From contig CM074822.1 of assembly GCA_037447605.1 (NCBI GenBank), forward strand, positions 1,077,492 through 1,141,491: a stretch of 64,000 nt of DNA. Direction: 5' to 3'. Origin of the DNA: Zygnema circumcarinatum SAG 698-1b. Lineage: Eukaryota; Plantae; Zygnematophyceae. The notes below the pieces were generated by a model. It did not search any database. It worked only from the letters and a program-made list of their open reading frames with translations, and was not told the origin of the DNA. The number at the start of each line of letters is the position of its first letter. The stretch's first letter is position 1. Below, in pieces: positions 18,055 through 51,002 of the stretch. The position numbers were made by a program, and so were the translations under genes.

Positions 18055-19516
18055 AGGATGAACTCATTTTACTCAACTCGAGAAGGGCTCAGTGATCAAG
18101 AGATCATAGTTGGGTAGTCAAACTTCTGCTTTATTATATAGCCAATAACCATTTTTTTCCTCATCGGTAGAAGTCGGACGGACAGTTCATAGTTCATAGT
18201 CCCTTGCCATTGACCATTTTTTGGTTCATTTTGAACCTGGGTGGTCAACGAGAACTGCTTTGCAGCCGAAAGATTTGGGCTGCTCCCAGTCCATTTCCGG
18301 TGAGTCTTGAGTTTCTGGAGGAGTGTGCAGGACATCGACGATTGCGAGGATGCAAATGTGATATAGACCATTGATAAGATGTGATTGACGCCTCAGAGAA
18401 ATGATGGGATTTAACTTCACCGCGTGGTTTCTTTCCCATTTGGTCTGTTCCTCTCGCGTGCTATCTCATCCTCCCTCTCCCTCCCTCCCCTCCTCTCTAT
18501 CTCCTCTCTCTATCTCTGTTTCTCTGGCTCCAGGAGTCAGAGTATACATTGTGTACTGTGGCATACATCAGCCTTGACATTCTGAAAACTTAGGAAACAT
18601 AATCCATCCATTTATGCAGTCCATGCCGAAGAATGTCACAAAGGACGTCTCGGAGAGATAGTCGGAGTCAAACACCACCATTACTGTCAAGGAAGAACAT
18701 ATCTCAAAAAAATCTTGACAGATGAATGAGGATGATGATGCAGTTAAATCTTCGCCTCTGTTCAAGTGGTTGATAGCGATTCACCTAAACTTCTCAGAAG
18801 TGTTGTTATCTCGGTGTGGAATGCGGAAGATAAGCGCTGGCGATTTGTCGCGGCACGGATCATAAATAGGGGATCGCTCGTCCTGCATGGTACTGTCGAG
18901 AAGAACGCTAAATTTGGGCACTGCAAGGTCCGAGCATCCTAATCAAATCCCTGGCAACTTCCACCACGATGCACGCATTGCGATGGACTACCTATCGACT
19001 TAAGCGATAGGAATGCCCTCATAAACATGCGTATATGGGCAAGTTCTCGCCGAATTCACATAAGTCTATTCTCATAATTATGGCGAGCATAAAGCACATT
19101 TGCGTGATCTGAACAAGATGTCATATGCGCTCTCGTGAAGAAAATAGTTTTTGCCGTAGGTTTTTCAAAATGTACAAAGAAAGGTTTCAATTTATCCGCC
19201 AAATTCCTTTGGGTCTAGCCTTCAAGCACACACATCTCAGACACTGATGGTAAATGCCATTTTCCTTCTAACTGACGAGTACTTGCACTGATGATCCTTT
19301 TGTGGAATAAGGAAACGAATCAAAAATCATTGCGCTACAAATAAAGAGCTTCCTTCCTCGCGGCTTCCATTGTTATCTTGGACTGCGATCTAAGCTTAAC
19401 ACGTCCTTCCCTCGAACACTCTCTCCTTCCAATTTCTAAAAACGAACCCCCAAAACTGTCAAAGCATCATCTTGGCCATCCCTTCAGCCAGCTCCGCCCA
19501 TCGTCCCCCGCCAACC

Positions 19517-21085
19517 CTAATACTCAGTTTTGAACACAACACAGCGGCGAGACGGCGGAAAGATGCCGTCTGTGTCGGGGGGCACATTGTAGGCCCTAGT
19601 TCCGTTGTAGGCCACGGAGAAGGCCTCCACAGAGAGCACAATGCAGCGATGAAGGAAGAAGTCGACCCCGCGATCTCTCTGATAAGTGCGCGCCCTGAGA
19701 GTGGCGTCCTCCCCAGTGAGATAGAACTGAGTGCCCGCAGACTCCTCACTATGGGGGCACTCCCTGAAGGCGCCCCTCCCCGACCTGTCGACTTCCACCT
19801 TCACCGCGGCCTCTCCCCCGACTCTCGATGTACGGAGGCCGGGACTGAGAGGCTGCGTCTCGTCCCTGCCCGCATCGTGGCCCAAATGGAACGTGGGGAC
19901 CTCCCTCTCATGGCCGGCGAAGAAGAAGTCGCAAAGCTCGTGTGGGTTGGAGGGGCAGACGGAGTGACAGGGGGGGGGAGATGGGGGTTTGGTGGGAGGA
20001 GGAGATGGGGACCTGCGGGGAGGAGGAGGTGAGGACTTGCGTTTGCAAAACTTGTTTTCCATGAAGGTGTGCTCATCCATGACAAAGCATCGCCGGTCGT
20101 CTGGGTACTTCGCCTGATTGGCGTCCCCCCTGTGAAGGACATTCTCCCCTTCGTGTGTTGCAAGTTGGATCCACGTAAGGGGGACGAGCAGGCAGCTCTC
20201 TGAGAGCCACTTTGTTGACAACTGTGCCAGAGAAAACAGCGCAAGGCCAGAATGAGTAGAATGAGCTCCTCCCCCACTTCCTTCTCCTTCCACATCTTCC
20301 CCACCTCTCACCTTCTTTCTCTCTTCTCATTTCTTCTCTTCTCCCCTTTTCTTCTCCCTATCTTCCTTCTCCTCTTTGTTTCCTCCTTTCTTCCCTTGAT
20401 ATTTCCTCTCTCCCTCCCCTCACCCCCAGGACGTAGTCGGCGGCCTCCTCCTTCTTGCAGAGCAATGCATTGACGGCGTCCGCGTCCGCAACGGCGACGC
20501 CGCCACTCACCGCGTCCGCCACGCGCCACTTCGCCCCGGAACTGCACGGACCTCCGTTCTCAGTTAAGCTGTCGTTAAACTGCACGGCAATCTGTGCTTG
20601 CGCTGTTCGCAAATTACAGAGCCCACGCGCTGAGCAATCCCTACGTTGACACTGCCACGTGGCGGACACTGACTAGGGAGCTGATGCCATGGCATCTGAC
20701 CTGGCACCACTGAGAAGCAAACCCTACAGATGTTCCGCCACGAGACGAAGCCAAATTGTTCAATTCGCTGACATGGAAAATGACCTGGCACCATTGAGAA
20801 GCAAACCCTACAGGTATTCCGCCACGTGGTGAAGTCATGCTGAAAAAATCCTAACATGTCAGATGACCTGGCAGCCCTAAGAAGCAAACCTTAACAGGCA
20901 TTCCGCCACGTGGTGAAGTCAAGCTGTCAAAATGATGACATGGCAGCTGACCTGGCATCCTTCCCGAGGCGGAAGTCGCAGTGCTCCCGCGCGGCGGCGC
21001 CGCAGCCGCCCTCGGACAGCGCCGCCGCCGAGCCGCCCAGGACCGCGCTAAACGCCAAAAGCGCCGCCACTGCCATCGCCGCCAT
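19517..21085 (-). CDS. Predicted secreted Cys-rich protein with two similar domains and an extensin-like SPPP linker, 3 exons, ~351 aa, left (intact) copy; family unknown
   Basis: Exons 21085-20952, 20640-20424, 20221-19517 splice in frame at GT-AG sites (phases 2 and 0). Signal-peptide-like MAAMAVAALLAFSAVLGGSAAA; 15 Cys; internal similarity EHCDF/ELCDF and C-x32-RRCFV / C-x31-RRCVV; linker SSPPPPRRSPSPPPTKPPSPPP. The exon-2 acceptor lacks a pyrimidine tract, so the model is inferred. Confidence 0.55.
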
Positions 21086-22835
21086 GATTGCCACGGCTCT
21101 CCGCTGCCGCCCGGCGCCCTCTTGTACTCACCGGAAATGTGGGCGGCCGACCGCAGGGGGCGGCATCGTTTGTCGTGATCCAAAGCGACGACGGGCGGGT
21201 GACACTGCGTGACGGGGCGGCTGGACCGCGACGGCGACTGGCGGACGGCGGTCGCCGTCGCGGTTCATGTCCGTACATAGTGTGGCAGATGGCGACGAGC
21301 AAATCGTGTACGTGGCACAATGTTGACCGTTGTGGCTACGGTTTTCCCGTTCAACGCGCCGTCAAACAGTCACATATTTACTCTACTATCATTAGTCAAT
21401 TATTGAACAATTAAAGACTTTTGGCTGTTCAAAATAGACGACTATTCGTAATCGTTGTCTTTTTGAAAAAATACTATTCCCGCTTTAGGTTTCTGGTTTT
21501 ATTTTGAAACAACCGTCCTTGTTCAAATGCGAATCTAATACGAAACCAATTGAACCTTGATTGATTTTTTATTTTTTTTCTTGGTCGTGTTCGATTTCAA
21601 TGGCAATCGCAAAGCGCGTGAAATTTTGGCCGTTTTCGTTCTTGTACCGTAAGGACATTGTTGATCTGTAAAGTCGTACGGCGAAAATTGTGCCGGAGTT
21701 AAGCAAATCTCTCAGATTGCCTAAATCCTGCGTGGCAAAAAGTGGAATCCACACGTGTGACCGAACAGAGTCAGATTTCGAACCATTGAACTACGAAATT
21801 ATATTGTTCAGTTTGGAAAACTATTCATTTCGAGTGTTCACAAGTTCAAATTGAACCTGCTCATTTGAACATTGAACAGTTCCAAAAAAACGTTCAATAG
21901 TTCAAATTGATGGTAGTACGGTATCGGGAGACGCTCGCTCCCGCTCCCGCTCCGCTTTGGAAATCTCTCAAACCGTACAGGGACGTCGACCGACGGACGG
22001 CGGTAGCCGTCCCGGTTCACATCCGTACAGGGGGCCGGTCCTTCCATGGGCCAGACATGGGGACTTATTGAACAAGAACAATATTTGCGGACGATGTCCG
22101 ATATTCGGTATATCGGGGTAATGGTTGAAGTCTCCCGATACGCTCTCAAAACGTGCAACATGTAAATTCATGTGTACATTGTTGTTGGTGAACATGTTGA
22201 TGTTGTTGTGGATGCATGCATGCATCACTGCTATGTTCCTTCGTTCGCTTTGGAAATCTCTGCGGACATTGTTGTTAGTGTCGTTGTGATGCGTACAATG
22301 TTAGGGCTCACCATGCAGGAACACTGCATTCACAACAACATCAACATGTTCACCAACAACAATGTACACATGAATTCATATGTTGCACGTTTTGAGAGCG
22401 TATCGGGAGACTCCAACCATTACCCCGATATACCGAATACCGGACACTGTCATCAAATGTTGATCTTGTTCAACAAGTCCCCATGTCTGGCCCATGGAAG
22501 GACCGGCCCTCTGTAAGGACGTGGACCTCGACGGCGACCGCCGTCCGCCGGTCGCCGTCGCGGTCCAGCCGCCCCGTCACCGCCGCCGCGTCACCCGTCA
22601 TCGACGCTTTCCTTCACGACAAACACTGCCGCCCTCCACGGTCGGCCGCCGACATATCCGGCGAGTACAAGAGGGCGGCGGGCGGCAGCGGAGAGCCGTG
22701 GCAATCATGGCGGCGATGGCAGTGGCGGCGCTTTTGGCGTTTAGCGCGGTCCTGGGCGGCTCGGCGGCGGCGCTGTCCGAGGGCGGCTGCGGCGCCGCCG
22801 CGCGGGAGCACTGCGACTTCCGCCTCGGGAAGGAT

Positions 22836-23151
22836 GCCAGGTCAGCTGCCATGTCATCATTTTGACAGCTTGACTTCACCACGTGGCGGAATGCCTGTTA
22901 AGGTTTGCTTCTTAGGGCTGCCAGGTCATCTGACATGTTAGGATTTTTTCAGCATGACTTCACCACGTGGCGGAATACCTGTAGGGTTTGCTTCTCAATG
23001 GTGCCAGGTCATTTTCCATGTCAGCGAATTGAACAATTTGGCTTCGTCTCGTGGCGGAACATCTGTAGGGTTTGCTTCTCAGTGGTGCCAGGTCAGATGC
23101 CATGGCATCAGCTCCCTAGTCAGTGTCCGCCACGTGGCAGTGTCAACGTAG
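22836..23151 (+). repeat. Intron 1 made of 4 tandem ~84-bp units each starting GCCAG|GTCA (mirrored at 20641-20956)
   Basis: GT of GCCAG|GT at 22841, 22925, 23008 and 23092; units share C(A/T)CGTGGCGGAA...GGTTTGCTTCT. Confidence 0.85.
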
Positions 23152-23368
23152 GGATTGCTCAGCGCGTGGGCTCTGTAATTTGCGAACAGCGCAAGCACAG
23201 ATTGCCGTGCAGTTTAACGACAGCTTAACTGAGAACGGAGGTCCGTGCAGTTCCGGGGCGAAGTGGCGCGTGGCGGACGCGGTGAGTGGCGGCGTCGCCG
23301 TTGCGGACGCGGACGCCGTCAATGCATTGCTCTGCAAGAAGGAGGAGGCCGCCGACTACGTCCTGGGG

Positions 23369-23881
23369 TGAGGGGGAGGGGGAGGGGAGGGGGAGGGGGG
23401 AGAGTATGGGGGAGGGGGGGAGGGGAGGGGGGAGAGTAGGGGGAGGGGGGGAGGGGGGAGGGGGAGGGGGGAGGGGAGGGGGGAGGGGGAGGGGGAGGGG
23501 GAGAGGAGGGGGAGGGGGAGGGGGGGAGAGAGGGGGAGGGGGAGGGGGGGAGAGAGGGGGGGAGGGGGAGGGGAGGGGGAGGGGAGGGGGGAGGGGAGGG
23601 GGGGGAGAGTAGGGGGAGGGGGAGGGGGAGGGGGAGGGGGAGGGGGAGGGGGAGGGGGAGGGGGAGGGGAGGGGGGAGGGGAGGGGGAGGGGGAGGGGAG
23701 GGGAGGGGGAGGGGGGAGGGGTAGTGGAGGGATGGGGGAGGGGGAGAGGCGGAGGGGAAGAGGGAGAAGAGGGGCGAGGGGGAGGGGGAGAGGGGGAGGG
23801 GAGGGGAGGGGGGGAGGGGAGGGGGGGAGGGGGAGGGGAGGGGAGGGAGGGGAGGGGAGGAGGGGGGGAGAGGGAAGGGGG
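23369..23881 (+). repeat. (GGGGA/GGGGGA)n G-rich tract in intron 2 of the right gene copy
   Basis: Direct reading; the left copy has a different, shorter tract (20255-20423). Confidence 0.9.
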
Positions 23882-26118
23882 AGATTCGTTCTCATTCTGG
23901 CCTTGCGCTGTTTTCTCTGGCACAGTTGTCAACAAAGTGGCTCTCAGAGAGCTGCCTGCTCGTCCCCCTTACGTGGATCCAACTTGCAACACACGAAGGG
24001 GAGAATGTCCTTCACAGGGGGGACGCCAATCAGGCGAAGTACCCAGACGACCGGCGATGCTTTGTCATGGATGAGCACACCTTCATGGAAAACAAGTTTT
24101 GCAAACGCAAGTCCTCACCTCCTCCTCCCCGCAGGTCCCCATCTCCTCCTCCCACCAAACCCCCATCTCCCCCCCCCTGTCACTCCGTCTGCCCCTCCAA
24201 CCCACACGAGCTTTGCGACTTCTTCTTCGCCGGCCATGAGAGGGAGGTCCCCACGTTCCATTTGGGCCACGATGCGGGCAGGGACGAGACGCAGCCTCTC
24301 AGTCCCGGCCTCCGTACATCGAGAGTCGGGGGAGAGGCCGCGGTGAAGGTGGAAGTCGACAGGTCGGGGAGGGGCGCCTTCAGGGAGTGCCCCCATAGTG
24401 AGGAGTCTGCGGGCACTCAGTTCTATCTCACTGGGGAGGACGCCACTCTCAGGGCGCGCACTTATCAGAGAGATCGCGGGGTCGACTTCTTCCTTCATCG
24501 CTGCATTGTGCTCTCTGTGGAGGCCTTCTCCGTGGCCTACAACGGAACTAGGGCCTACAATGTGCCGCCCGACACAGACGGCATCTTTCCGCCGTCTCGC
24601 CGCTGTGTTGTGTTCAGAACTGAGTACTAGGGTTGGCGGGAACGATGGGGGGAGCTGGCTGACGGGATGGCCAAGATGTTGCTTTGACAATTTTTGGGGT
24701 TTGTTTTTTTGAAATGGGAATGATAGAGTTCTCGAGGGAAGAGTTGGGCTTAGATCGCTTTCCAAGATAACAATGGAAGCCGCGAGGAAGAAAGCTTTAG
24801 GTTTGTAGCGCAATGATGTTTGATTCGTCTCCTTATTCCACAAAAGGATCATCATTGAAAGTACTCGTCAGTTGGGAGTGACGTGGCGTTGACCACCAGA
24901 TCGTGGGATGTTTGTGCTTGCTTGAAGGCTTGACTCGAATTCGGCGGATAAATTGAAATCCTTCTTTTGTGCATTTTGAAAAACCACCGCCATTACGTTT
25001 TTCTTTACCAGAGCTGATTCGGTTTGTTCTGACATCACAAATTTGCTTCATCCTCGCCATAATTATGAGAAACGATTCCTGATGAATAGGGCGAGAAACT
25101 TGCCCGTAGACGCAAGTTTATGAGAGTAGTCCTGTCGCTTTATCTCAACCTTAGAGTCGTGGTGCTCTTTTCATGATCCTTGGCGTGAGACATCGCCAGC
25201 CCATTCTACATCGAGACAACAACACATAGCTGAATCACTAGAAACCATTTGCAAACCGAGGCGGAGATTCACCTGTGTCACTCCAAACCGTTATTCCAAA
25301 TGTGTGGGCATTCCTGAGCTTTGGTCCTCCAAGGCATTGGCGGTGTTTGGCTTGACTCGCTCCAGAATGTCCTCTTTGGGGCATTCTTTTGTCCAGGCTG
25401 GAGGAAGGAATGGATGACACTCCCTATTGAGCATGAGAGGTTATAGGGTTTTCGGGTAGGTTGAGAGCATGCCACAGTACACAGAGTAGTAGGCTCTGGC
25501 TCCTATAGCCAGAGAGAAGTAGAGAGGGAAGGCGAGGGAGCGGACATGACCAAATGGGGTGGGTGTGTGAGTGGGAGGGAGGGAGGGCGGGAGGGAGAGA
25601 GGGAGGGAGGGAGAGAGGGAGAGAGGGAGAGAGGGAGCGAGGGGGAGGATGAAGTCGGGAGGGAGGGAGAGGGAGAGGGAGGGTGTTGGGATTGGGAGGA
25701 AGAGGGAGAGGGAGAGTACGTGCGTGGAGAGAGAGCCTCCCCCCGCTCCAAAGCACAAGAGGAAGAACAAAGAAAAGGCCCTGCCAAAGCTTCGTGCTTG
25801 GAAGCCCCGCCTGCCTAACTCACATTATAACATTGCAAATACAAAGGAAGTAGAGCAGACGGCATCCTACGAACGTTTCCGGTCGACCAGTGTTAGTCAT
25901 CGGGATCGACCGACCTTCTTTATTCACGACTAAACCACAAAGATTAAAGTCTATGCCCGAGAGTGGGTGCTAAATAGCCTTGCTAACGAACATTGACTTC
26001 CTCTTTCTCTTTCTAGAGATCCCATACTCTCAGCCTCCCACTCTCTTCCATTTCCCCATACTAATCTCAGGCAGCAAGTCATTTTTGGACCCGCTTTCCC
26101 TCTCCTCTCCCTCTCTCC

Positions 26119-28740
26119 TCAGGTCCCTCCTTCCCTTACTTCCCCCTCTTTTCCGCTACTTCTCAATTTCCTTCTTCCTGACTCCTGCTCTCCTTCAGCC
26201 TTAGCAGTATAAGCCCTACTCACCACTTCATCATCCCCCCCTCTCCCACATGGCTGCTTAGCCTTTAGTGCCCCCTCTCCTTCTGTAGAATCCTCTCCTT
26301 CCGTACTGACTCCTACTCCATTTAGACCTACCCCCACCCCACCTTCGAAAGGAAGGGAACCCCTATCTTTGTCTCCCTCACTAGCCTCAATAAGGCCGCC
26401 ATTATCACAGGATTCAATCGCTCCCTCACTCCTTCCTTTTCCTTCACTACCTCCTCCATCTTCCCCTCCCAGGTTATCGCTCAAAGTGGGTTTTTTTCTC
26501 CGACGAGTTCGAACCTTCTTCTTTCCTACCAAATCCGAAGACTGAGTTCTCTTTGCTACCATCGGAATTCCTGCAGCTTTCATCTCCTCCCACAGTGCTT
26601 GAGCTCCCTCTCTCCTCCCTGCTTTCCAGTAGGCTTCTAACATGGATGCATACATAACCCCATCCGGTTTTATGTCCGAAGATCTCATCTCTTCAAAGAC
26701 TCTCACTGCATCTCTATACATGCCTGCCTTCTTGTATACTTTAATCATTGTCCCATACAATACTTCGTCCAAAGGGCAACCTGCTGTTCTCACATCCTGG
26801 TAAAGATTAATAGCCTCCGGATAAAGCTCTGCAGTGCCAAGTGCATTTATCAAAGAGCTATAAGTCACTCCATCAGCTTTATAACCTGCAAGCTGCATTT
26901 TTCGGAAGGTTGATTCTGCTTCCTGAATCATTCCCGCCTTACCAAAAGCATCAATGAGAGAATTAAAAGTAAACTCATTGGGCTCTTGCCCAGCTTCCTG
27001 CATCTCCTTGAAAGTATCCAAAACCCTATCAATCTTTTTGGCTTTCCCATACATGTCTATCATACAGCTGTACACCACATTGTTAGGTTTAAGCCCTTTC
27101 TGCTTCATGTCTGCAAATAGACCTTCCGCATCTCTAACTTTCCCTGCCTTTGAAAAAACTCCAATAATCGCCGAATAAGTAACCTCCCCAAAAGCACACT
27201 TTTTCTCATTCATTTCTCTGAAAACTTCAATAGCTTGCCTCCACTTCTTTCCTGCTGCATATGAAGCCATTAACGAACTGTAAATAACTTCGTCCGGTTT
27301 TAATCCGTCCGATTCCATCATTCTCATCAAAGCTGTAACTCTCTCCTGCATTTGAGCTGCTCCAAATATATGCACAAGTGTCGCATAACTGAATTTGTCA
27401 GGCGAGATTCCACTCTCTCTCATCTCCAAGAAAAGACTATATGCCTCCTCCTTCCTTCCTGCTCTACCCAAACTATCCATTATGCAATTCCAGCATGTAC
27501 AATCCAAAGCTACTCCTTCCTTTTGAAGCTCACGAAAAAGACATAAAGCTTCATCAGCTTCCCCTGCCTTTCCATGTAAGTCAATCATCGTACTGTAGGC
27601 TACTAAATCTGCCATGTATCCTCTCTCTCTCATCCTCCCAAACATCTCCTTTGCCTCCTCTTTCAGCCCTGCATTCCCACATGCAGAGATCAAAGTCCCA
27701 TATGTGAATCTGTCTGGTTGAAGTCCTGCTTTCTTCATCTCCTCAAAAATCTCCATCGCCTGCTTATGCATTCTTGCTCGCCCATAGACATTGATCATAG
27801 CATTGAATGTAACGGAGTCTGGAGCACATCCATTTGATTTCATATGCTGAAACCATTTTTCTGCAGTCTCAACTCGATGAGATTTTCCTGCAAAACTTAT
27901 GACTGTGCAATATATGACATTGTCTGGTAAACATCTCCCTTCCTCCATCATCTCAGTCAACAAATCTTCAACTTCCTTCCATCTCTCCGCCTTTAGGAGA
28001 GACTTAACCAGCATTGTGTAGGAGTAGATATCTGGAAAAACAAAGGATTTCATCCAATCTACAAACTCCACAGCCTTTTGCCAGCCCTTGATCCCCTTCA
28101 GCACTCCATTCATGTCTAAAGCTGAAAGTTTTCCCTCCCATTCTCTCAAAGCCAATGAAAGACTTTCCCTTTGAGACAAATTCTGCACAATTCTCCTCAC
28201 TTCCTGCACTCTCTCTGGCTGTATCGCTCCTGACCTTCGACTAAAATCTGACTTTTTGACCGGCTGAGATCCCTCTCCTTCTCCTCCCTTGACTGACTCT
28301 CCTCCAGTCTTATAAAGTACCCTAATTCCCTTTCTATACTGAGCTTCTGCAGGTGTCCAGTTCGCCCGAACCCCACTACTTTTGCAGCTTGTTTGAAGTC
28401 TTCCATTTGCAGGCCTCTGCTCAACCTGCTCTTGAAATGACTCTCCACTACTGGTGCATGTTTCAGCATTCCATCGCGAGAATTTATCATAGCTTTTCTT
28501 CAAATCATTCACAGTTGAAATTCCACTTCCACTTCCGCTTCCTCCCCTATATTTTCCACCCTCCCCTTGTGCTGGAGAGCCCCCTAAACTCCACCCTGTC
28601 GTATCTGCTCTCTCTACCACAATTTCAGATCTTACCATCCGCTTCCATTTGCATTCCAAAACACTTTCACCGATTTTCCTTCCCCGACTTAGTCTCCATC
28701 CCAACTCCATCGCTGCTGCCAAGCCCGTCTGCAAAGCCAT
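26119..28740 (-). CDS. P-class pentatricopeptide repeat protein, single exon, ~873 aa
   Basis: ORF 26119..28767 (TTG start); first ATG at 28740. About 14 tandem 35-aa motifs, e.g. PDSVTFNAMINVYGRARMHKQAMEIFEEMKKAGLQ and PDRFTYGTLISACGNAGLKEEAKEMFGRMRERGYM. No E/DYW domain seen. Confidence 0.95.
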   Translation of the reverse strand: MALQTGLAAAMELGWRLSRGRKIGESVLECKWKRMVRSEIVVERADTTGWSLGGSPAQGEGGKYRGGSGSGSGISTVNDLKKSYDKFSRWNAETCTSSGESFQEQVEQRPANGRLQTSCKSSGVRANWTPAEAQYRKGIRVLYKTGGESVKGGEGEGSQPVKKSDFSRRSGAIQPERVQEVRRIVQNLSQRESLSLALREWEGKLSALDMNGVLKGIKGWQKAVEFVDWMKSFVFPDIYSYTMLVKSLLKAERWKEVEDLLTEMMEEGRCLPDNVIYCTVISFAGKSHRVETAEKWFQHMKSNGCAPDSVTFNAMINVYGRARMHKQAMEIFEEMKKAGLQPDRFTYGTLISACGNAGLKEEAKEMFGRMRERGYMADLVAYSTMIDLHGKAGEADEALCLFRELQKEGVALDCTCWNCIMDSLGRAGRKEEAYSLFLEMRESGISPDKFSYATLVHIFGAAQMQERVTALMRMMESDGLKPDEVIYSSLMASYAAGKKWRQAIEVFREMNEKKCAFGEVTYSAIIGVFSKAGKVRDAEGLFADMKQKGLKPNNVVYSCMIDMYGKAKKIDRVLDTFKEMQEAGQEPNEFTFNSLIDAFGKAGMIQEAESTFRKMQLAGYKADGVTYSSLINALGTAELYPEAINLYQDVRTAGCPLDEVLYGTMIKVYKKAGMYRDAVRVFEEMRSSDIKPDGVMYASMLEAYWKAGRREGAQALWEEMKAAGIPMVAKRTQSSDLVGKKKVRTRRRKKPTLSDNLGGEDGGGSEGKGRSEGAIESCDNGGLIEASEGDKDRGSLPFEGGVGVGLNGVGVSTEGEDSTEGEGALKAKQPCGRGGDDEVVSRAYTAKAEGEQESGRRKLRSSGKEGEVREGGT

Positions 28741-29357
28741 ATCTGATGAATATTGCCTTACTTCCAAGCCAGCAAAGGAAGCACTTGCACTGCTCCAGCA
28801 GTCAGGATGTAAAACAAGTCGCTGAGCACGATGTCCATGAGACTCCCCAAAGTATCAAACGATGAAGGCCGAAGTATGGTCTGCATCACATGCGTGAAAA
28901 CGAAGTCAGAGAAGGATGAGCCAAGCCATGGCCATGGTCAGCCATTGGTCAGCCTAAAAGGGTAAAGATAAAGTGTATTATAACTCATGCTCTATGTCTG
29001 ACAAACCAAACACATTGCGTTTCTTCTCTTTGAGAGCATGCATCATGTTTAAGTTGAAGCAGAGGATGAAGTCTATTCTTGCAAGCAGCAGCTATTGTAG
29101 TCCAAACCATCAGCTGGTTTGCCATTTTTCATTTGCAGGGTTTTACAAACAAGGACTGAGAGTATCAATCCTTTTTCCAACTAAGGAAAATCTTATCTGT
29201 AATAACAAAACTTGAATAAATTGAAATAATCGTATAACAATAAATGGAATAAATTCGGACTACTGTCGAGCAAAAACTAAAAGGACATTTCTGAATTCTT
29301 TCCAAAGATAAATTGAATCTATTTCCGGAGCAATTTAAGTATTTGCAGAAAAGGACA

Positions 29358-49279: not shown

Positions 49280-50600
49280 CGTTGGGAGTCCGTACGACCG
49301 TACAACCGTATGACCGTACATTGAAATGTTGCCCCTCGCACTCCACATAAGTGGCAAGTATTAAAGCAAGAGTCAATCAGAGCCTGCCACGTTAGATACA
49401 GTTGACACGTGTCGTTTTATTATTAGTCAACGATGGATACGTCTACAATGGATACCCACCTTTGAGGGTACAGTGCCAGTTATCCAAGATCAGGGATCCC
49501 AAATGTACGGGCGTAAGAAAGTACCGTTGTAAAGTGGGGTATTTATTCTAGTCTAGAAATTCAGGAAACCAATGAGAGACGTCCACGTGTGCAAGACTTT
49601 CGACGTGGCGATATCTGATTGCGTTTTTAGTTTAACGTACAGGACAAATCGTTTGGATGTCCACCCCCGCTATCCGCTCTCCTAATCCCACGTGACCACC
49701 TCTGATCGGTCTTGCATTTTTTTCAACGTAAAAGACAATTGTTTTGAAAGGATGCCCAGTCCTGGACGTCGTTAGACTCGTTACAGCGGTCATGACCGGT
49801 ACAAAATAGTCAACAACGGTGACCGTTTCAGTTGAGCGTACAACGGTTCGTACGAAGGGCGGTGGGTCTGTCGGTCTGTCACACGGCTCCGCCAATCGGA
49901 GAGGCAAACGTGGCATCAGGACCGTACGTGTGTCGGTTTAGCCAATCAGGTGACGCTAAGTATAAACGTCAAGTCAAAATTTGTCGTTTTGTGACGATTC
50001 TGGTTCGAACTGTTTGTCGTTTTGTGCAGATTTTGGTTCGAATTGGGTCTCCTTCAAGCAAGGTCTCGCGATTTGTTTTTTTGGGATGGGTCTGTGAACG
50101 GCAGCCAGTCACAGCCTGTCACGTGGATTATGGGACACGTGTCGTCACAAAATGTAGCCACCTCATTCTTTAGTCAATGGACAAGGGTAAAGGAGCAAAA
50201 TCGTACGGTGCAAATCAATTTGCGGCTGCCTGTACAACATATGATGACGTAATTCCAACGTCATCATATTGCCATGCAAAGCCCAAAAAATTCGTGGGAG
50301 GAAATCCAACGGTCAAAGAATGACCACGTGGCACAACAGTCCGCATAAAAGCCACGTGGACAAGGCCTTTTGACCATATTGTGTCGTTTTGTTCCGACTG
50401 TTGAAAGCTTGGCTCCCGCCGACAAGGCCGACCAAATATTTCGGCTCCAAAACACTGAAAACGACAAACGTACCGCAAGTCACGACAAGAAGCCCAGGCG
50501 TACAGATCGACCGATAACGGATACCGTATCGATACATATTGATAATATCGACAATATTTATAATACTGGTTATATCGATATTGTCCTGTCGCTTGATACG
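49280..50600. repeat. Non-coding ACGT/CCAATCAG-rich repeat remnant between the divergent RLK and RFC3 genes
   Basis: CGTAC(A/G)ACCGTA repeats (49290-49320), CCACGT motifs (49386, 49583, 50325, 50354), CGATA block (50510-50580). Same motif vocabulary as 1-7300 and 13250-13330. Confidence 0.45.
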
Positions 50601-50756
50601 GGACCTCCAAAACCCTTAACTACAAATTCCGAGACCCTAAATAAAATCTTAACCCCTGAACCCTAGACGCGACTACCCCTACCCCTACGCCTACCCCTAC
50701 GACCATAGGCCCTGAATCCTGTCCCCTGCCCCCCTGCCCCTTAACCTCAAATTCGG

Positions 50757-50775
50757 AACCCTAAATTTTTGGGCT
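50757..50775 (+). promoter_or_regulatory. Telo-box-like AACCCTAAA next to a site II motif TGGGCT
   Basis: AACCCTAAA 50757-50765 and TGGGCT 50770-50775, with further degenerate ACCCTA copies at 50610-50700; upstream of a ribosome-related gene. Confidence 0.4.
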
Positions 50776-50798
50776 CAAGAAGGCGCCCAGAACTGACC

Positions 50799-51002
50799 AT
50801 GGCTGCTGCCGCCGCGAGGTCCGTGGGAGCGCCGCCATGGCGCCACGTGGCGGCGCAGGACGCGGATTCTTCACATGGAGGAGGAGGGCGGGGCCGTACA
50901 GGTTGCTCGCACGTGCGGTGTGTCCGGGGAGGAGGCGGTGGGGGGATTGGCGGCCATGGCGTGAGGGGAAGCTCGGGCTGCAGTCGGCAGAGTGTGGAGA
51001 AG
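50799..51002 (+). CDS. Candidate first exon of RFC3 (GC-rich, MAAAAARSV...) ending at AG|GTGAGG; phase does not match the next exon
   Basis: ATG 50799, donor 51003. A 10-N gap at 51092-51101 may hide another exon. Confidence 0.3.

Follow-up and report, generated by a model that had tools for sequence, protein, structure and literature searches.

What does a palindrome of two head-to-head genes encode, and can its product still be made as an extracellular protein? This is the question raised by positions 19,517–24,630 of a stretch of the Zygnema circumcarinatum SAG 698-1b genome (GenBank assembly GCA_037447605.1, contig CM074822.1, positions 1,077,492–1,141,491, forward strand), the whole 64,000 nucleotides (nt) of which are hereafter called the window. 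An earlier note on this DNA had read there a pair of divergent genes, each spliced from three pieces, for a secreted, extensin-like, cysteine-rich protein with two copies of a domain that it could not assign to a family. Our analysis leads us to propose, with moderate confidence, an old inverted duplication with a converted gene pair, the intact left copy of which encodes an extracellular binding protein of two modules.

The head-to-head arrangement was confirmed by comparing the two arms. The inverted repeat consists of the arm blocks 19507–20313/23834–24640 (96% alike) and 20404–21191/22601–23388 (98%), beyond which weaker inverted matches (73–86%) extend to approximately 19002/25140. Base by base, the left and right arms show no difference in exon 1 (0/134), in the predicted intron 1 (0/311) or in exon 2 (0/217), and exon 3 differs at 3 of its 705 bases, all within the final 65, with one K/R change. 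The 5′ and 3′ flanks of the arms are ∼23–26% diverged. Because intron 1 is as identical as the exons, the pattern points to gene conversion from arm to arm over an old duplication, and not to selection alone; the locus would be a compact case of such conversion within a small palindrome. The second intron has 202 nt in the left arm but 558 nt in the right one, where it is largely an array of (GGGGGA)n (∼85 units, 23366–23883); its left counterpart (20222–20423) is a CT-rich 202 nt, and this microsatellite escaped the homogenisation that spans the exons on either side.

On the minus strand of the left arm, three exons separated by GT-AG introns join into a single frame of 351 amino acids (aa) with 15 Cys (coordinates in Table 1). 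The transcription of this copy was verified in RNA data: five runs of one organism contain 51–69% of the sampled words of 19300–21400, and the contigs of four runs (X1, X2, X3, and X5) were placed on the left arm (19000–21500). Contigs specific to the left arm reach ∼19153 in the 3′ untranslated region (UTR), the 5′ contig reaches 21215, and the word depth in exon 3, at 11–28, is not low. The junction predicted at 20424/20221 was found exactly, as a joint skipping 202 nt (CT..AC on the plus strand, GT..AG on the minus strand) in the contigs of all four runs, with a depth of zero inside intron 2. Contigs of three runs break at 19531, just beyond the final arm-differing base (19530), and two runs have, at 19580, the base of the right arm linked to a splice joint of the left type. 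This suggests expression of both arms, merged by the assembler; alternatively, the RNA comes from a strain unlike the reference. In run X2, the word depth drops from 25.4 in exon 3 to 9.0 in the contig with the joint, and in exon 2 it is 3.3 (20206–20644); 3′ bias could explain this, as could an additional start or partner of exon 3.

The identity of the protein was sought by homology, in a protein collection without the proteins of this genome. A word-index search with the exon-3 protein gave no match, and an exhaustive search with the same query retrieved 45 proteins at E≤1e-3, the best of them at 38% identity, so no close orthologue was found. Where a source is named, it is Mesotaenium endlicherianum, Netrium digitus, or one of several Closterium strains; the other proteins come from assemblies of Logan, ENA, or JGI, among them metagenome contigs (GROS21). 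As far as seen in these sequences, the family is confined to the conjugating green algae (Zygnematophyceae). Its members share a domain of ∼150 aa with the signature C-P-x-x-P-x3-C-D-F ... PTF ... QFY ... RTFQ ... C-V-x-L-P ... NLNPGDGN-x2-FPE-x-RRCVVFKT, and their identity to the C-terminal domain of the window protein (D2) is 24–42%. In 49 of 63 relatives the domain ends within 5 residues of the end of the protein. The C-terminal motif of the family is RRC[VI][VI]F[KQ]T, and the last residues of the window protein are RRCVVFKTEY in the left copy and RRCVVFRTEY in the right.

Most relatives are 180–280 aa long, start with a hydrophobic stretch, and end in the domain, often with a Pro/Ser/Ala-rich spacer in between; many are small (∼180–210 aa), single-domain, Cys-bearing proteins with signal-like N-termini. 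In other members, the domain follows a TAXi-type aspartic protease, precedes a GDSL esterase, or adjoins a thioredoxin domain, each layout having two representatives. The closest relatives, the metagenome proteins P0001 and P0047, have the layout of domain, SPPPP linker, and domain. The GROS21 contigs L002 (423–2547) and L001 (145–1205) carry genes of the multi-domain type; in these, the domain occurs three times or more, the linkers are of SPPPP type, and introns interrupt the penultimate domain. Fusion partners aside, no Pfam model matched the pieces of the window protein (E≤1) or the 42 family members searched (E≤10). Since neither a Pfam model nor a solved structure matches, the earlier reading could not assign the domain. 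Judging from profile and motifs, the window gene adds a new and divergent member to a family of probably extracellular domains that is specific, as far as seen, to zygnematophytes and has not been described before.

The fold of the domain was modeled with AlphaFold. Given a 42-row family alignment (A1), the model reached a predicted local distance difference test (pLDDT) score of 88.7 and a predicted template modeling (TM) score of 0.85, with eleven strands and one short helix, nearly all of it beta, while the single-sequence model of exon 3 reached a pLDDT of 30.7 only. The modeled fold is a beta-sandwich without a close characterised relative. A profile search of the PDB gave no match at E≤10, and Foldseek against the PDB and Swiss-Prot, a check proposed in the earlier note, returned no specific relative (E>0.08, for the PDB E>0.1; TM ∼0.3). 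With VIA-align only generic cadherin, Ig, and accessory-domain sandwiches were retrieved, the best being a cadherin repeat (Z 5.4) and a SusE-like binding protein (Z 5.3), and feature and shape searches of the ESM Atlas gave only rows at chance level (scores ≤0.70, TM ≤0.41). Among the AlphaFold DB clusters, six uncharacterised proteins resemble the model at TM 0.47–0.59 and probability 0.99–1.0 (A0A835YRB6, R7Q9E1, A0A3R7P5Q9, A0A7S1XGZ4, A0A2V3IQ34, and D7FPM5); some of them are presumably red or brown algal, by their accession range.

The claim that the protein holds two diverged copies of one Cys domain was examined with a hidden Markov model (HMM) profile, for which 36 domain instances from other species were used and the window protein was left out. 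D2 (residues 200–350) matched over its full length (HMM 2–148; 115.9 bits, E 1e-37). In the N-terminal domain (D1), the last third matched (residues 120–165, HMM 101–145; 24.2 bits, E 2e-9), and the start aligned with a negative score (residues 26–39, HMM 6–19; −2.1 bits, E 0.24). When both domains were added to the family alignment, the five conserved Cys columns of the family were occupied by Cys in D2 and likewise in D1 (C28, C36, C106, C127, and C162). The direct alignment of D1 to D2, however, was not significant (z 0.8; 399 of 2000 shuffles reached the score), and because it is at chance, the claim holds only at the level of the profile and the Cys pattern. At that level, the N-terminal half is a degenerate copy of the family domain.

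The two domains are joined by the linker KSSPPPPRRSPSPPPTKPPSPPP, of 23 aa, in which SPPPP stands at 181 and SPPP at 190 and 198, a minimum and not a long array. In the wall proteins of green plants, contiguous Ser-Pro3-5 motifs become hydroxylated and arabinosylated, and by analogy the Ser-Pro3-4 linker probably does as well. The linker contains no Tyr and is therefore without the cross-linking motifs of extensins (YXY, VYK). The three SP3-4 motifs thus stand behind the term extensin-like, and the missing Tyr motifs do not: as read from its linker, the protein is not a true extensin, and the term overstates the case. N-glycosylation sequons are present at N67 and N323. The protein is probably secreted, as had been claimed, to judge from exon 1, which encodes 22 hydrophobic residues (mean Kyte-Doolittle value 1.9) ending in AAA; that part of the claim which depends on the splice from exon 1 to exon 2 finds no counterpart in the RNA contigs, as described below.

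The explanation that we favour combines these elements. An old inverted duplication would have left a gene of three exons in each arm, with transcription running outward from the ∼1.6-kb spacer that the two share, and gene conversion would hold the gene bodies near-identical while the flanks drift. If intron 1 is removed, the left copy would yield a 351-aa precursor with a signal-like peptide, a degenerate D1, and a well-kept D2, the two being ∼150-aa, disulfide-bearing beta-sandwich copies joined by the short Ser-Pro3-4 linker. In the family, the domain would close small secreted proteins at the C-terminus or hang by Pro-rich linkers on apoplast-type enzymes, and it may be an extracellular binding or anchoring module; the protein with two such modules would then bridge or coat polymers of the wall or mucilage, much as a small chimeric hydroxyproline-rich glycoprotein (HRGP) would.

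Several observations weigh against this explanation. The joint 20952/20640, the other junction predicted in the earlier note, is absent from the RNA contigs of the four runs, and the contigs that cover it read through intron 1. X1 record 2 (20424–20981) and X3 record 13 (20424–20958) continue from the spliced exon 3–exon 2 through unspliced intron 1 into exon 1, X5 record 20 (to 20692) enters the predicted intron by 52 nt, and X5 record 23 (20811–21081) crosses its donor. The same transcripts thus show one intron cleanly removed and the other fully retained, so the link of the signal-peptide exon to the remainder is unproven; since the contigs drop rare forms, a minor spliced isoform is possible. 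Of the two junctions at which a lack of spliced reads was to refute the earlier note, one is thus seen in the contigs and the other is not. With intron 1 kept, the frame of exon 1 stops after 55 codons, and without that splice the long frame of exons 2 and 3 has no ATG before model residue 165 and no signal peptide. In addition, the three-piece frame proposed for each arm is open in the left arm and breaks in the right, where the exon-2 donor reads GGGG+T (GGGGG+T on the left). With one G fewer, the homologous junctions break the frame, and a frameshifted product of 256 aa without linker and D2 results; an in-frame product of 348 aa would require an alternative donor at 23359. The middle of D1 (exon 2) gave no match to the family profile, D1 seems to be without the QFY...RTFQ segment, and no match to any CAZy-type binding module was found.

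These points raise the alternative of a gene pair that is transcribed but no longer productive, which survives better than any other and which we nevertheless judge rather unlikely. Here, growth of an 84-nt repeat that copies the 5′ splice site would have crippled the removal of intron 1, the mRNA would carry a 55-codon upstream frame and a startless long frame, the right copy would be broken in frame as well, and conversion would spread lesions as easily as repairs. Retention of intron 1 in every covering contig, next to full removal of intron 2, is what it predicts. It also fits the makeup of intron 1, which consists of ∼3.2 tandem 84-nt units of ∼80% identity (20688–20957 and 22830–23095), each repeating the donor context GCCAGGTCA; the 100% identity of this intron between the arms, the frameshifted right arm, and the degenerate D1 agree with it too. 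The left copy, however, keeps its frame of 351 codons with all the family motifs of D2 intact, as reflected in the 115.9 bits, and exon 1 retains the ATG, the signal-like peptide, and C-x7-CDF in the right phase. Moreover, expression is not low, and the contigs drop minor isoforms.

That intron 1 is, or was, an intron finds support, though not proof, in several features of the sequence. After its ATG and hydrophobic stretch, exon 1 continues with C-x7-CDF, in the way in which the domain starts after the signal-like N-termini of the relatives, and each of exons 1, 2, and 3 contributes to the family Cys of D1. The junction is of phase 2, CAG/GT, and in the gene of the closest relatives (metagenome contig L002) a CAG/GT intron, likewise of phase 2, interrupts the penultimate domain 12 residues after CDF, compared with 6 residues here. 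No further copy of the intron-1 repeat was found in the window. Most of its units carry the G-box palindrome CCACGTGG, which occurs 14 times in the window (0.35 expected). Outside both introns, CCACGTGG clusters in GC-rich intergenic stretches (136–1137, 3645, and 50324–50850), often as GCCACGTGGC, and these clusters may be promoter elements.

If the left copy is productive, as in the explanation favoured here, its product could still be something other than a wall binder. It is improbable, in our view, that it is a secreted, diffusible signal or defence factor, comparable to the glycoprotein sex pheromones of Closterium or the pherophorin-derived signals of Volvox. The many small, single-domain, Cys-bearing members with signal-like N-termini would suit such a role, as would the restriction of the family to algae that mate by conjugation, and Closterium mating employs secreted glycoprotein pheromones (PMC5736609). 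However, no named pheromone protein is among the named matches, a statement that involves no direct comparison with a pheromone sequence; the recurrent fusions to enzymes via Pro-rich linkers fit an accessory binding module better, and the RNA runs could not be tied to mating conditions. With as little confidence we can extend the binding-protein explanation to a module invented by the Zygnematophyceae and specific to them, serving wall or mucilage (adhesion, conjugation tube, or zygospore matrix) as a streptophyte counterpart to the pherophorins. The output of the present gene would be gated by regulated removal of the intron made of tandem copies of its own 5′ splice site, with a G-box in each unit, and the protein would be made only under conditions such as mating or stress. 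That the frame belongs to a transposable element or repeat family, the finding that would have undone the host gene of the earlier note, is extremely improbable: the palindromic layout and the repeat-rich introns might suggest it, but only the two arm copies occur in the window, no Pfam domain is present in six open reading frames (ORFs) of the spacer, antisense strand, or introns, and the homologues elsewhere are ordinary secreted-type proteins, some of them fused to host enzymes.

Table 1. Features of the palindrome, in positions of the window (CAG/GT: the slash marks the exon–intron boundary).
Feature	Positions	Strand	Content and evidence
Left gene, 3′ UTR, approximate end	19153–19516	−	left-arm-only contigs X1 19153–19362, X5 19156–19560, X2 19257–19560, X3 19236–19560
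Left exon 3, stop 19517–19519	19517–20221	−	end of D1, Pro-rich linker 19970–20038, whole D2 19520–19969; ORF, translation, family profile, RNA contigs
Left intron 2, CT-rich, GT-AG, confirmed	20222–20423	−	joint in X1, X2, X3, X5; depth 0 inside
Left exon 2, middle of D1	20424–20640	−	sole open frame; RNA contigs
Left predicted intron 1, phase 2, CAG/GT..AG, ∼3.2 tandem 84-nt units	20641–20951	−	retained in all covering contigs
Left exon 1: ATG, signal-like peptide, first Cys motif (C-x7-CDF) of D1	20952–21085	−	transcribed: X2 21003–21215, X5 20811–21081
Left 5′ UTR, at least this long	21086–21215	−	X2 record 10 covers 21003–21215
Central spacer between the divergent genes	21216–22600	.	inner inverted repeat 21977–22216/22325–22564 (90%); left-only AT-rich stretch
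Right exon 1, identical to left copy	22707–22840	+	sequence comparison
Right predicted intron 1, 311 nt, identical to left copy	22841–23151	+	sequence comparison
Right exon 2, one G fewer before GT donor	23152–23367	+	sequence comparison
Right intron 2, mostly (GGGGGA)n, ∼85 units	23368–23925	+	repeat analysis
Right exon 3	23926–24630	+	linker 24109–24177, D2 24178–24627; structure model of 24172–24627

The AT-rich stretch of the central spacer (∼700 nt, 21281–21976) is found solely on its left side. On visual inspection, two similar copies of ∼34 nt flank it (∼21245–21280 and ∼21995–22030), which suggests an insertion or a rearrangement mediated by duplication. On the right, the palindrome is adjoined by a single-exon gene of 882 codons for a pentatricopeptide repeat (PPR) protein (26122–28767, minus strand), whose best matches are land-plant PPR proteins at 22–34% identity; since no self match was among them, the proteins of this genome are missing from the collection searched.

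No living group is more closely related to the land plants than the conjugating green algae. Their wall proteins are little known (PMC10762512), and in Closterium CRISPR knock-outs exist (PMC5736609). The present locus overturns no established view. It has led to an undescribed family of probably extracellular domains, defined from ∼60 sequences and with a confident model, for which there is neither a Pfam entry nor a solved relative. Because the domain is repeatedly attached to apoplast-type enzymes, it can be put forward as a concrete candidate for a module, specific to this lineage, that binds wall or mucilage.

Compared with its zygnematophyte relatives, such as ME000083S10042 of Mesotaenium endlicherianum (P0002), CAI5475135.1 of Closterium sp. 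Yama58-4 (P0040), EP00270_P005442 of Netrium digitus (P0019), and the metagenome proteins P0001 and P0047, the window protein shares the ∼150-aa domain but has two copies of it, whereas most relatives have one; its D1 is far less well kept than the first domain of P0002. Among better-known systems, the pherophorins of Volvox and Chlamydomonas (PF12499) have two related globular domains with a Ser/Pro-rich, hydroxyproline-bearing stretch between them and are secreted into the algal matrix. The layout is similar here, with two related globular domains and a Ser/Pro-rich linker, but the linker has 23 aa and is not a long rod, and the lineage is streptophyte, not chlorophyte. PF12499 itself matched neither the window pieces (E≤1) nor any of the 42 family members (E≤10). 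Pherophorins are counted among the matrix HRGPs (PMC10762512).

With the chimeric extensins and further chimeric HRGPs known from green algae and plants (PMC10762512, citing Liu et al. 2016), the window protein would have in common a signal-like peptide, Ser-Pro3-4 motifs, and globular domains that are not of HRGP type. Extensins are cross-linked through Tyr motifs; here, there are only three SP3-4 motifs, the linker is without Tyr, and the bulk of the protein is globular. PF01190 (PAC/Pollen Ole e 1) gave no match either, with the window pieces at E≤1 or with the 42 members at E≤10. The extensins of green algae are chimeric and not of the classical type (PMC10762512).

Finally, carbohydrate-binding modules and Ig- or cadherin-like sandwiches, such as the SusE-like BT4661 (4ak1) and the accessory domains of GH5 enzymes (9l3d, 5xrc, and 4yzt), are beta-sandwiches of similar size. 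The structural similarity to them is only generic (Z≤5.4, Foldseek E>0.1, TM ∼0.3), and no sequence relation was found. Like binding modules, however, the domain family stands in terminal position behind Pro-rich linkers on extracellular enzymes, and because a terminal sandwich module in such a setting is the usual appearance of a binding module, a bivalent binder of wall or mucilage is the favoured role for the two-domain protein.

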